Assembly: GCA_013416795.1 (NCBI GenBank)
Contig: RQSC01000020.1
Coordinates: 569,793-580,750 of the forward strand
Direction: 5' to 3'
DNA: 10,958 bases
Source: Prasinococcaceae sp. CCMP 1430
Lineage: Eukaryota > Plantae > Prasinodermophyta
The notes beneath the pieces are model-generated. The model did not search any database and was not told the DNA's origin. It saw only the letters and a list, made by a program, of their open reading frames with translations. Every line of letters begins with the position of its first letter. Positions within the stretch are counted from its first letter, which is position 1. The position numbers were made by a program, and so were the translations under genes. This document shows positions 3,371 to 10,647 of the stretch, one piece after another.

Positions 3371-4502
3371 CTACGCGAAGAGCCCCGAGACGAAGGTGGC
3401 GCTCGACGCGAAGATGTCGTCGGTGGAGAGCAGGTCCGACGACAGGAGGTCGAACTGCTCGGCGGGGCCCAGGTTGGGCACGCCGGCCGACGCGATCCAC
3501 GGGAGGCTCACGCCGGCCTCGGGCTTGCATGAGCCCAGGACGGGCCCAGGCATGCCCGCCGGCGGCGCGGTCGCCTCCGTGCAGTAGCTCGTCGTCGGCG
3601 CGCCGTCGTCCTCCGTGCGCAACGACAGCACGTCGTCCATGGAGGGCGACGCCGAGGCGCCGCCCCAGCCGCCTGGCGGGGCATCGAGCGCCCAGCCATC
3701 GAGCAGGTTCGCCTCGTCGACGGCCGAGAGCTCGCACACGTGCTCGCTCGCCTGCCCCTCGCTCGCCTGCTCGTACGTCTGCTCGAACGCCTGCTGCTGC
3801 GCCTGTTCCCGCGCCCCCGCCTGCTGCGCCTGCTGCACCTCATGCGCGCCCGCCGCCGCCGGCGAGGCCTCCTGCAGCGACATCGTCGGCGACGGCGTCG
3901 CGGGCGCCTCCACCTTGCGCCGCCGGCTCACCGACGTGCGCCTCTTGGTGGGGACCTTGGTGACGATCTCCTCCATCGAGACCTTGGCGGCGGCCGTGCG
4001 CGCGCGCTTGGGGGCCTTGCCCGAGCTGCCGATGGAGTCCTCCGATGACGTGGCGGGCTCGAGGGCGACGCGCTTGGGCGCGCGCGAGCGCGGGCGCGCG
4101 GGTGCCTTCACCTCGGCGGCGCGGGCCTTGGCGCTCGGCGCCGACCTCCGCCGCGCGGCGCCCGCGGGCTTCTGCTGGCGCGTGAGCTTGCGGCGCTGGC
4201 ACTCCGGGCAGAGCAGCTTGGCGCCGTTGTCCAGAGCCCCGGCCCCGTTGTGCTCCAGGTGGCACGCCTTGTGCACCCACCTCGAGCAGCACGCGCAGCT
4301 CAGCCAGCCGGCCGCGCTGCTCGCGCCCTTCCCGCCCGCCGCGGCCTCCGCCGCGTCGGCGTCGTTGTACGTCACCTGGCAGTAGGGGCAGCACTTGCCG
4401 CGCTTGAGCCTGATGCCGCACGCGTTGCACAGCGTCACGAGCTTGCCCTTCTGCATGCCCTTGCGCCACATGGGCGTCGAGTCGGTGCCGCATGACGCGC
4501 AC
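3371..4502 (-). CDS. Main exon of a GATA-type zinc finger + PHD finger protein (putative chromatin-reading transcription factor)
   Basis: CASCGTDSTPMWRKG...TLCNACG is a GATA finger (C-x2-C-x20-C-x2-C). It is followed by CPYC...CACCSRWVHKAC...CPEC (C4HC3 PHD), a basic K/R-rich region and an acidic C-terminus. Acceptor gcgaacAG at 4504-4503 (phase 2), stop TAG 3373-3371, high GC3. Confidence 0.88.
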
Positions 4503-5007
4503 CTGTTCGCGCGCGGCGCCGTGGAGAAACCGAATGGTCCGCGCACGCGCGTGCGTGTCCGTGCGTGTGACCAGCAGCATTTCGGAATCGCGCGGGTAGG
4601 TCAAAGTGCAAGGGCGCCGGGGTGAGGCCGGGGGTGGGGGGCGCGTGAAGAGCGTCGGTGCGGGTAGCGTCGGCGGTGGCGCCAGGACGACGCTGGCAGC
4701 GCTCGACCCTATAGGATACACGGAGGCGCTCAGCCACGGCGTCATGAATTCACGTCGAAGTGCGCTGCATGCGACGGCCTCAGAGAGGCTCGCAGCGGCG
4801 TCCGGGGCACAATGGCCGCTTGGTGGCGGCGACTTCGGGCGCAGTGCGCTACTCGTGCCGCAGGACCCACAGATTGCGACGCGTGCAAGAAGTGCGCCGG
4901 TCGCGGGCACGCCGCCGCCCTCGTGGCTGGCGGTCGAGCCCGTCGCGGCATCGGTGGTCAGACACGCGCGTGCCCACGCGCACGCGCATCCTCACCAGCA
5001 CGCGCAC

Positions 5008-5515: not shown

Positions 5516-5516
5516 N
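5516..5516. other. Single ambiguous base N (possible hidden scaffold junction)
   Basis: n at 5516. Confidence 0.95.
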
Positions 5517-6288: not shown

Positions 6289-6319
6289 NNNNNNNNNNNN
6301 NNNNNNNNNNNNNNNNNNN
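6289..6319. other. Assembly gap (31 N)
   Basis: Run of N. Confidence 0.98.
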
Positions 6320-6538
6320 GCACCACTCCGCACCCCCCACCCCGCGGCGCGGCGCGCGCCCGCCGCGCGCGCGCGCTCTGGCAGCGCCGCAGCCGCGAGA
6401 TCGCCCCCTTTCAACAGCTCTTTTGAACGCTGCGTGCATTTTGACCTACTTTTTTCTTTTTTCAGTCGCTTGCATTCTGATGAAGAGTTCTACTTTCGAT
6501 ACCGGCGATGCGGTGGCGCAAGTGCGCAGGGTGCGAAC

Positions 6539-7572
6539 TCAGAACACCTCATCAGCGCCGAGTTCCATGACGCCGTCCTCCTCGCTGAGCAGAGAGCGCG
6601 GTGCACGCGCCCTGCCATGTGGGCGACCACTGCCGCCATCGCCCCCGCCTACCCATGACATGATGTCATCGTCCGCGTCGCTCTCGTCGTCCTCGACGGT
6701 GCCATTGCCGCTCGTGGTGAACGTACGCGCAGCGGGCTCGCGCAACGGGCTGGATGCGCGCTCAGGGGAACGCGCGCGCATCACAGCACCCCCGTCGACC
6801 ACCTCCCCCTTCATCTCGTCATACAGCATGCGCTTGCGCGCCTCCTCCCAAGTTCTGGGCACACCGCTGCCGCCCGCGCTGCTGCCACCTTCCTCATCCG
6901 AACTTGTGTCTACATCCGCCACGATAGATTCGTGCCATGCATGCTTCGCCGCACTGCTCGCCTCGCCCGTTCCCTTTCCCTTTCCCTTTCCTTTTATGTT
7001 GTTTCCACCCTCGGCAGACTGAATAGACGCGATGTCGCCATCCTTCTGGAGAAGGGCGGGCGTACGTGCAATCGTTTTCGACAGAATGACGGGAGGGAGG
7101 AAATGGAGGATCAGCGTGTGCATATGCACTCACGCGCATTCGCCCCACACACATCCGCGCGCGTCGCCTGTAAAGGCACGCGCGCATGGCGTAGCGCGCT
7201 TACCTCGACGGTAAACTCCTTCTCAAGAGCGCGTGCATCCTCGTCGCGGCCTTTGGAACGCAGTCTATGCGCCATTGCGCGCGCTTGATGTACAGCTCGC
7301 GCCATCTCGGGACTGGCTCCCTGCCCGCTCTTGCGCATCATACTTAAGAGCTTCGTTGGTCCGAGTGCCTCGACCTCCTTCAGGAACGAACGCTTGGACT
7401 CGGCGGCGGGGCCCATCGCCTTGGGACCCACATCACGCACGGTATAGTCGAGCCCATCATCGTCATCGTCGACTTCTCCGGCAATCACCATGACCTGTGC
7501 ACGCTCCGCCTCCGCTTGAATGTGTTCCAAGTACTTGCTCTCAAAGGCTGCTCGCTCGCCCTCTGAGAGCCC
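6539..7572 (-). CDS. Hypothetical protein, 3' exons 7572-7204 and 7045-6539; 5' exon(s) unresolved (probably 7700-7950)
   Basis: Acceptor ctatctgcAG (7574-7573). Donor GAG|GTAAGC at 7203, branch-like CTGAT and acceptor ttctccAG (7047-7046) join in phase 0: ...ARALEKEFTVE|KDGDIASIQ... Stop TGA 6541-6539. Protein-like charged/acidic composition; no family recognised. Confidence 0.62.
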
Positions 7573-8041
7573 CTGCAGATAGGGCGCGTGTGCGTGACCT
7601 CGCCGACGACGCTGCCGCCGCTGCCGTGGCCCCGGCGCGTCGGCAGATAAAGCGCGCGCGCGCATCGCCACGCGTCCGCAGAGATATTTCCGCGACGCAG
7701 CAGGCGCGCGCCGCCGCGCGCGGGGGAACGGCGGGGGCGGATCGGATGTGTGCGCAGATAGGGAGCGAGAGCGAGAAAATTCGGCCAGGCCACCCCGCCG
7801 CGGCCTGCTCCTCGTCTCTCGCCGCAGCCTCGCGCTGCCGTCTGTGCTGTGGCTGGCGTTGCTGTGGGTTGGTTGGCGAGCACGATGGGGGTGGGGGAAG
7901 GGGTGAGGCGGCCGCGGCCGCGGCGGCGGCGGCGCAATCGTGATCCGCGCGGGATCGGCAGGCGCGCGGCGCGAGCGCGCGTCGGCGCGCGCGCGCGCGC
8001 GCGCACAGCGCCGCCGCCGCCGCCGTCGTTTCATCCCCGCG

Positions 8042-8107
8042 TGTAACGCCTTTACGGTTTGTAACCAATGTAGGGTTTGTAACGAATGGCGTTTCAGCAC
8101 ATTCGTT
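8042..8107. promoter_or_regulatory. AT-richer motif cluster between divergent units: 3x TGTAAC, telo-box (TAGGGTTT 8071-8078), CCAAT (8065-8069), 8-bp inverted repeat
   Basis: Motifs read directly; the cluster sits between the minus-strand orphan 5' end and the plus-strand PheRS fragment. Regulatory function is inferred. Confidence 0.4.
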
Positions 8108-8261
8108 TTGATGGGTGGAGGTTCGGTCGTTTCGGGGGGTGGGGAGTTGAGGTTCGCGCGCGCGCGCGCGTTTGACAGCTCGCGCGGCAAAGCAGCCGCC
8201 GGCGGCTGCTGCGCGCGCGCGAAGGGGCACCGCCGGCGGTGCCCTAATTGCGCGGCGGCGC

Positions 8262-8861
8262 GGCGGCTACGGCTCCTTCGGCTACAACTACTACTGGAAG
8301 CGCTCCGAGGCCGAGAAGAATCTGCTGCGCACGCACACCACGGCCGTGTCGAGCCGCATGCTGTACAAGCTGGCGCAGGAGGGCTTCCGGCCGCAGAAGT
8401 ACTTCTCCATCGACCGCGTCTTCCGCAACGAGGCCGTGGATCGCACGCACCTGGCCGAGTTCCACCAGGTGGAGGGTGTGGTGTGCGACCGGAACCTCAG
8501 CCTGGGCCACCTGATGGGCCAGATTCGCTCCTTCTTCGAGCGCATCGGCATGCCCAGCGTGCGCTTCAAGCCCGCCTACAACCCCTACACCGAGCCCTCG
8601 ATGGAGATCTTCGCCTTTCACCAGGGGCTGGGCAAGTGGGTGGAGGTGGGCAACTCGGGCGTCTTCCGGCCCGAGATGCTGCGTCCCATGGGGCTGCCGG
8701 AGGACGTGACGGTCATTGCGTGGGGGCTGAGCCTCGAGAGGCCCACCATGATCCTGTACGGTATCGACAACATCCGGGACCTCTTCGGCCACAAGACGGA
8801 CCTGGACATGATCCAGAGCAACCCCATTTGCAGGCTGGGCATGGACGACGTGCAGGGCTGA
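8262..8861 (+). CDS. FARSA: Cytosolic phenylalanine-tRNA ligase alpha subunit, C-terminal ~199 aa only (5' half absent from window)
   Basis: [59 protein letters not shown] (class II motif 2), [60 protein letters not shown] (motif 3), NPICRLG. No stops or frameshifts, very high GC3, stop TGA 8859-8861. Confidence 0.95.
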
Positions 8862-8883
8862 GCGGAGCCACTCACCCCCAAAC

Positions 8884-8888
8884 TGTAA
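8884..8888 (+). terminator. TGTAA poly(A) signal for the PheRS-alpha unit
   Basis: TGTAA 23 nt after the stop codon. Confidence 0.55.
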
Positions 8889-8983
8889 ACATCGAGCGAC
8901 TCATTATTACTACCGCAATCTGCCTCTTCTAGCTATGAGCGCGATCTGAGACAGCTGCGAGCTGCGAGTGCTTGGTCTCCTCA

Positions 8984-10352
8984 TCAGTAGCCGACCGCCT
9001 CCGAGATCACTCCGATGCACCCGCCGAAAACGGATCCCCAAACGACGAGCCAGGACAAGTGCGCGCGCAGCACGTCCTCCACCATGGACTTCACCTTGTT
9101 GGGCGTGAGCTCCTCCAGCCGCTCTTCCATGAGGCGGTCTACCTCGCGAACGATCGCGTTGACGGGCGGATTGGCCGCCTTGTCCGCAACGATCTCGCTC
9201 AGGTGCGGCGCAACGTCATCGGCCAGCTATTATGTGGGGCAAAGACGCCGCGCGCGAGGGCCGGGCCCGGTCAGCTGGCTGTGTGCACGCCTGGGCACGT
9301 GCGCAGCCGTGCGAGCGCACAGCGCCGTAGGGGAAATGCCCTGCCCCCGGTGACCGCGCTTTGCAAGCGAGAGCGCACCTTGCCGATGAAACCCTTGACG
9401 AGAGCCTTGAGCTGCTCCCCGCCGATGCCCATCGTCTTCAGGATGAGCCCTGCAGGGCGCGTCGAGATCTTCTCCAACTTCCTCTCGAGCGCCGTGTTGA
9501 ACTCCTCGTCGGACAGGATCGAACGGAGCTTGTCCTCGACACCCCACTGGCATGTGGAGGGCGCGCACCGCGTGTGTGGGAGCGAGCAGAGCGTCAGCGG
9601 AAGTCGGAGCGCGGCATTGGGGCGAGCGGCGCTGTGCCACATCTCCGCTTTGCTGCTCCGCGCGCGCACCTGTGTGCTGTAAGGCCCGAACTTCTTCTTG
9701 AGCTGCTTGGTGAGGAACGTGGGCTCGAAAAAGGTATCCATGATCATGTTCTTCATGGTCGCGCGGATGGCTGCGGGATAGAGCAGCAGCGCGTGCCCAG
9801 CGGTCAGCCTCGGGAGCTCACACGGCCAACAGGCGCATAGGCTCGCGCACGAGCGCGCCACGCTGCCGCATCCGCCCCGCGCCCCACCCAGCGCGTGCCT
9901 CACCCTTGAACTGCTTCGGAATAATACCGCTGCCGAAGACGCCGGGTATCTCGTCGAAGAGCATGACGATGGCGATCCAGTTGGTCGCACCCCCTGCGAA
10001 GCCGAACAACCCGAACGCCATGATGTAGGCGCCGGCGGTGGATGCAGCGTCGTCGTCCTTGAGCGCGGTGCGCAGCGCCACGCCAATGCACTGCGTCGGT
10101 TTCGTGAGGTGATAAGGCATGGTGTGGGGAGTATAGCAGGGTTGGAGGGCGGGTGGCGAGTGCATGAGCGAGCGAGCGAGAAGGTGGCACTCACGCGTGA
10201 GCATGCCGGGCGACCGCAATCGCGCGCTCTCTAAGGCACGCGCCGCGGGTGCCATCGCCGCGGCCGCAGCGAGCGCGCGCGTGCGCGCGCGTTGAGCGCA
10301 CCATCATCGCGATGGTGCAGAGGTTGGCGACATCGCCGCGGTTGAGGCCCAT
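8984..10352 (-). CDS. DUF445-like membrane protein, 5 exons (10352-10302, 10090-9904, 9770-9670, 9546-9379, 9226-8984), 249 aa
   Basis: All four introns are GT-AG and phase-consistent (donors GTGCGC, GTGAGG, GTGCGC, GTGCGC; CTGAC branch sites at 9807, 9597, 9274); exons sum to 750 nt. The spliced protein has FGLFGFAGGATNWIAIVMLFDEIPGVFGSGIIP near the N-terminus and ELTPNKVKSMVEDVLRAHLSWLVVWGSVFGGCIG at the C-terminus, the two hallmark hydrophobic ends of DUF445-type proteins. Confidence 0.85.
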
Positions 10353-10438
10353 GGCACGCGTTCGCGCGCGGGCGCGCCGAGCGGCGGCGCCGAGCGGTTG
10401 AACGGGCGCCGAACCGCAGGCGGGCGCTGCCCCACGCG

Positions 10439-10647
10439 NNNNNNNNNNNNNNNNNNNNNNNNNNNNNNNNNNNNNNNNNNNNNNNNNNNNNNNNNNNNNN
10501 NNNNNNNNNNNNNNNNNNNNNNNNNNNNNNNNNNNNNNNNNNNNNNNNNNNNNNNNNNNNNNNNNNNNNNNNNNNNNNNNNNNNNNNNNNNNNNNNNNNN
10601 NNNNNNNNNNNNNNNNNNNNNNNNNNNNNNNNNNNNNNNNNNNNNNN
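10439..10647. other. Assembly gap (209 N)
   Basis: Run of N. Confidence 0.98.

Follow-up and report, generated by a model that had tools for sequence, protein, structure and literature searches.

The window, as we call the whole 10,958-bp stretch of DNA that was analysed (GC content about 68%), carries on its plus strand the 3' part of a gene for cytosolic PheRS-alpha. In Pfam, PF01409 (tRNA-synt_2d; class II core, Phe) matched the open reading frame at 8172-8861 (8.5e-65) over profile positions 75-244 of 246 only. A phmmer search against the PDB aligned residues 28-224 of this frame with residues 300-497 of human FARSA (3l4g_A; 7.9e-97), and residues 300-494 of 8s8b_A were also aligned. Class II motifs 2 and 3 were both found in the fragment (LRTHTT...FRNE...EFHQ.EG; GNSG.FRPE...AWG.SLERP). 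The coding part opens with the second and third bases of the Ser296 codon, continues with the codons for Gly297 to Gly495 and ends in a TGA stop at 8859-8861; 8262-8858 corresponds to residues 297-495 of the enzyme only. The features of the locus and the DNA contigs that bear on them are collected in Table 1.

Table 1. Features at the PheRS-alpha locus and independent DNA contigs placed on the window.
Feature	Position	Strand	Basis or remark
Genuine 3' part of cytosolic PheRS-alpha (FARSA-type) CDS	8260-8861	+	PF01409, human FARSA, A0A7R9Y643, RNA contig
3' UTR with algal TGTAA poly(A) signal at 8884-8888	8862-8896	+	Transcript contig ends and sequence
Right breakpoint	8252-8267		X3 record 25 matches to 8267; X3 record 29 and RNA contigs match from 8260
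Probably misplaced GC-rich low-complexity segment, ~670 bp	7591-8259		X3 record 25 block order
Left breakpoint, 10-bp overlap AGGGCGCGTG	7581-7590		X3 record 23 matches to 7590, record 25 from 7581
Minus-strand neighbour exon, no Pfam family	7111-7579	-	ORF translation and sequence reading
X3 record 29 (7454 nt)	8260-10430		0 mismatches; 1826 more letters without a contiguous place on the window (if colinear, left of 8260)
X3 record 23 (8595 nt)	6330-7590		0 mismatches; then 1378 letters unlike the window
X3 record 25 (5834 nt)	7983-8267 (own 9-293) and 7581-7981 (own 1316-1716)		0 mismatches

Homology to PheRS-alpha starts at GGYGS (8262), which was where tblastn matches began with all queries, namely five longer homologues and the organism's own 495-aa protein. 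GC3 is 0.955 across 8262-8858 compared with 0.70 in the 30 codons upstream, and the first in-frame ATG is at 8358. The N-terminal 296 residues gave no tblastn match at E < 1e-3 on either strand of the whole window. The best stray N-terminal match (7221-7322, minus strand, E 0.002) was lost when the organism's own protein was the query; all others had E values of at least 0.28. Motif 1 and its adjoining conserved segment were not encoded in the six frames of the window as searched by tblastn, nor were the N-terminal domains PF18552 and PF18553 when A0A7R9Y643 was the query. An earlier, sequence-only reading had described an orphaned fragment of this kind, with an abrupt start of homology at GGYGS, an intact, high-GC3 catalytic C-terminus followed by TGTAA, a first in-frame ATG at 8358 and no N-terminal exon on either strand. 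That description was borne out at every point.

Several genes on the minus strand flank the fragment. Those at 735-2036 and 3371-4546 look like ordinary genes: the former encodes a PP2C phosphatase (PF00481, 6.5e-74) and is apparently intronless, and the latter a GATA zinc-finger protein (PF00320, 1.1e-10) with a weak PHD-like match (PF00628, 0.0065). Downstream of the fragment, a metatranscriptome contig (X16 record 14) is a spliced minus-strand transcript with exons at 9491-9546, 9670-9770 and 9904-10055. The two introns of this gene are 123 and 133 nt long and have canonical GT..AG borders. Its joined frame reads ...AFGLFGFAGGATNWIAIVMLFDEIPGVFGSGIIPKQFK... and is membrane-protein-like in appearance; a homologue search of the protein collection with the overlapping minus-strand ORF at 9274-10194 gave no match. 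The exon nearest to the fragment on its left, at 7111-7579, has a putative CTGCAG acceptor at 7574-7579, which on the minus strand reads cgccctatctgcag and then ggg across the splice site.

Near the junction at 8260, CTAAT lies at 8244-8248, CG at 8259-8260 and GC at 8258-8259, and there is no AG anywhere in 8224-8298. The 8-bp string GCGGCGGC is present twice, at 8252-8259 and again at 8260-8267. The sequence-only reading had recorded the CTAAT motif, the CG in place of an AG before the exon and the tandem duplication correctly. Runs of N of 1, 31 and 209 letters occur at 5516, 6289-6319 and 10439-10647, and none at the junction. We considered whether N gaps might hide 888 nt beside 8260 and rejected this, as the gaps are too small and wrongly located. 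The upstream AGs at 8223, 8194, 8191 and 8177 were likewise rejected as acceptors, since their use would add non-homologous residues and the join in RNA is at 8259/8260.

Transcripts of the gene were sought by a word-content search of sequencing runs with sampled 31-mers of 7600-8900. The contigs of four runs were then placed on 6330-10430, and the longest pieces are those considered here, among a set that holds 3688 more. Run identities are coded, and the contigs are those of Logan, in which rare variants are lost. An RNA-type run that shares an organism label ('organism A') with the DNA-type runs contained 0.49 of the 7600-8900 words, a share that corresponds to the length of the exonic part. 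Matches were also found in marine metatranscriptomes. The RNA contig X15 record 7 (1532 nt) matches 8260-8895 with its positions 895-1530 and zero mismatches. It has a further 894 nt upstream of the match to 8260, and these are absent from the window. The final 30 of these upstream letters are in frame with the window and translate to LERVRKVHES, after which the window protein follows. YLERVRKVHES is the conserved segment that precedes GGYGS in homologues (P0004, P0002). The sequence-only reading had suggested asking RNA what is joined to 8260-8262, and the 894 nt ending in ...YLERVRKVHES are the answer. The match likewise begins at 8260 in two 514-nt contigs from marine metatranscriptomes (X16 record 9, X17 record 15), each of which has 101 nt extra. 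At the other end, transcripts stop at 8895 (X15 record 7) and 8896 (X17 record 20), about 8 nt past the TGTAA.

The corresponding complete protein is A0A7R9Y643 (P0122; UniRef, from a transcriptome of the green alga Prasinoderma coloniale). It is 495 aa long, and its residues 297-495 are identical to the translation of 8262-8858 at 199 of 199 positions. It came to light in a word search whose query was an alignment led by a 387-aa homologue; a search with the bare fragment is blind to proteins longer than 400 aa. Residues 286-296 are YLERVRKVHES, the precomputed domains are PF18552, PF18553 and PF01409, and the motif 1 region lies at residues about 219-275. The 296 codons before Gly297 leave a 5' UTR of 8 nt within the 894 upstream letters, in agreement with the RNA contig. 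Given a full-length mRNA and a 495-aa protein, the organism expresses an ordinary, complete PheRS-alpha. Motif 1 is present in the transcript-derived protein, and its lack in the window is thus the fault of the assembly and not of the gene. The protein database held no protein of 126-400 aa at 100% identity, as a window-like truncated ORF would give. A metagenome scan with A0A7R9Y643 gave 80 loci with identities of at most 64%, and each locus was one match that spans about 1.3-1.6 kb (usually 1.4-1.5 kb) on a single contig; P. coloniale DNA was not among these 80 loci. Two environmental proteins, P0002 (256 aa, ENA) and P0126 (498 aa, JGI), are 86% and 81% identical to P. coloniale PheRS-alpha, respectively, and their likely sources are other marine representatives of the Prasinoderma lineage.

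Independent DNA was available for the same region. In each of 14 DNA-type runs of organism A, 0.95 of the sampled 31-mers from 7600-8900 were present; by our estimate, the absence of the words across 7982 and 8260-8267 would cause about this loss. In one of them, X3, all 30 bins of 6330-10430 were covered, intergenic DNA included, at a word depth of about 66-100x. The run type is an automated guess, but X3 covers intergenic DNA and both strands evenly and so behaves as genomic DNA. None of the three X3 contigs in Table 1 follows the order of the window across the region upstream of the fragment. In record 25 the two window blocks stand in the opposite order, 1022 nt apart. No contig bridging 7590 or 8260 was present among the contig pieces listed, which are the longest of the set; a short bridging contig of low coverage may still exist. 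Overlaps of 8 and 10 bp are too short to break a graph of k=31, so the X3 contigs lack the junctions of the window. The 3' half itself lies on a single X3 contig at a depth of 66.5, compared with 74-85 for its neighbours, and this contig runs unbroken past 8895 into the downstream genes.

The segment between the breakpoints is in turn made up of two pieces, 7581-7981 and 7983-8267, with a third break at 7982. The second GCGGCGGC copy (8260-8267) is the 8-bp overlap common to both source sequences at the right breakpoint. TGTAA occurs three times within the segment, at 8042, 8060 and 8078, as would be expected of the 3' region of another gene. In X3, the summed word depth is 9,000-13,500 in 7837-8110, compared with about 70-100 elsewhere. 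Tracts of (GCC)n and (CG)n, both GC-rich simple sequence, lie at 7837-8110 and at 10166-10302; their summed word depth is 30-180x that of unique DNA, and there are many spurious joints between them. Such simple-sequence tracts are probable hot spots of misjoining in this assembly. On its other side, the left breakpoint cuts the intron of the 7111-7579 gene 7-16 nt upstream of the exon. The upstream exon or exons of this neighbour look to have been removed by the same misjoin, and the gene thus also looks artefactually orphaned at its 5' end.

We consider it highly probable (roughly 0.87) that the window is locally misassembled and that the orphaned 3' half of PheRS-alpha is an artefact of assembly rather than a real biological feature. 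Direct observations carry this reading: a full-length mRNA and protein exist, the 5' half is missing from the window, and DNA contigs diverge from it at both breakpoints. At about 7590-8260, some 670 bp of low-complexity, GC-rich DNA that belongs elsewhere in the genome would have taken the place of the true sequence. The foreign DNA would have been joined through the 10-bp overlap at 7581-7590 and the 8-bp GCGGCGGC overlap at 8260-8267, with the tandem 8-bp duplication as the footprint of the overlap join. At a minimum, this would have removed the 888 nt for residues 1-296 together with the promoter and, from the divergent neighbour, one or more 5' exons. From the coincident break positions in DNA and RNA, rather than from a direct reading, we infer that the real genome left of 8260 holds the 5' half of the coding sequence; under a misjoin it would read ...GTGCGCAAGGTGCACGAGA. 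The step responsible was presumably gap closing or overlap merging. The join in RNA at 8259/8260 is also the point at which the DNA contigs depart from the window, which fits a breakpoint and not a splice site. If 8260 is not the start of an exon, the absence of an AG acceptor is expected. The earlier suggestion of a branch point followed by a dinucleotide one change away from AG is therefore moot.

The sequence-only reading had left three options: a split gene joined by trans-splicing or expressed as two polypeptides, a recent partial duplicate or transposon footprint, and a chimeric assembly join. The last, which it called quite plausible, is the one that has held up, given the divergence of X3 contigs at both breakpoints and the existence of a full-length mRNA. 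A truly split gene, with its 5' half at another locus and trans-spliced onto 8260, or with the two halves expressed separately, might be suspected from mRNA contigs that join sequence foreign to the window exactly at 8260 and from the missing 5' half. Trans-spliced group I introns are, moreover, described for the mitochondrial genome of the species (PMC3873408), although these belong to a different compartment and mechanism. Trans-splicing does not predict that X3 DNA contigs with zero mismatches should themselves depart from the window at 8260-8267, and again at 7581-7590. Confirmation from DNA that the two halves have separate neighbours is thus contradicted by the X3 divergence at both breakpoints. 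The junction has no AG acceptor, whereas the confirmed nearby introns are canonical GT..AG introns, and an acceptor-less exon start is thus out of character. Among the titles and abstract openings returned by a full-text literature search on trans-splicing in P. coloniale, none dealt with nuclear trans-splicing. We therefore regard a truly split gene as very improbable. That the 8260 junction is real in the assembled isolate, with an mRNA built from a distant 5' half and an acceptor-less 3' half, is equally hard to credit; if true, an early-branching lineage of green plants would be joining the halves of a protein-coding gene by trans-splicing in the nucleus.

A genuine partial duplication, or the footprint of a rearrangement, is only slightly less improbable. 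Here a complete PheRS-alpha would lie elsewhere and a dead 3' copy would have arrived at this locus through a microhomology-mediated event, a biological kind of join that the 8- and 10-bp microhomologies would also suit. A second copy would branch the assembly graph or double the depth, and X3 shows a single contig whose depth is near that of its neighbours. That contig is uninterrupted at about 8895 and has a differing left neighbour at 8260. The 3' copy is 100% identical to the transcript and, at a GC3 of 0.955, has no sign of decay. A further reading places the 5' exons in cis but beyond the window, with the divergent gene inside a very long intron that ends in a non-canonical acceptor at 8259. 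The window is indeed just 11 kb, and the search of the upstream plus strand was confined to it. This reading fares as poorly as the split gene, because the X3 DNA contigs diverge at 8260, the acceptor would be ..GC and not AG, the confirmed local introns are only 123 and 133 nt long, and no N-terminal homology was found across the 8.2 kb upstream within the window.

Of the known systems, the closest is FARSA (PDB 3L4G chain A, 8S8B chain A; PF01409 with PF18552/PF18553/PF18554), with whose human form (residues 300-497) 8262-8858 aligns along its length. The organism's 495-aa protein has PF18552, PF18553 and the catalytic core. There is no difference in the organism, and residues 1-296 are missing in this assembly only. 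Genuinely split, trans-spliced nuclear genes exist, as in Hsp90 and dynein of Giardia; their fragments carry splice-like signals at the ends, and DNA reads confirm the separation. The present case resembles them on paper, in that the 5' half of the mRNA is not encoded beside the 3' half, but differs in that the window has no acceptor and DNA contigs contradict the separation. It also shares features with the misjoins and wrong gap fills that short-read or scaffolded draft assemblies contain at GC-rich low-complexity DNA. There, too, breakpoints fall at short shared strings, here of 8 and 10 bp, and the insert is rich in simple sequence and of very high k-mer depth, with N-run gaps nearby and junctions contradicted by independent contigs.

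The strain CCMP1413 is that of the published reference genome; JGI sequenced its mutation-accumulation lines on Illumina, and MMETSP0806 is also of this strain (PMC11884799). The coded runs (14 runs of 2024 that belong to 13 studies, plus an RNA run of 2015) appear to fit these CCMP1413 data. The published P. coloniale assembly was made with NextDenovo, Arrow and NextPolish and has 22 chromosomes (PMC7455551); it may differ from the draft from which the window comes, which is in at least 184 pieces and contains N runs.

Misjoins in the GC-rich low-complexity DNA of this draft can take away upwards of 1 kb of coding sequence and cut short two adjacent genes at once. In P. coloniale, PheRS-alpha is most likely a complete gene, whose 495-aa product combines a class II catalytic core with DNA-binding-fold domains at its N-terminus. 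For the biology of the organism this means that P. coloniale has no special PheRS-alpha, and the value of the finding lies in quality control.
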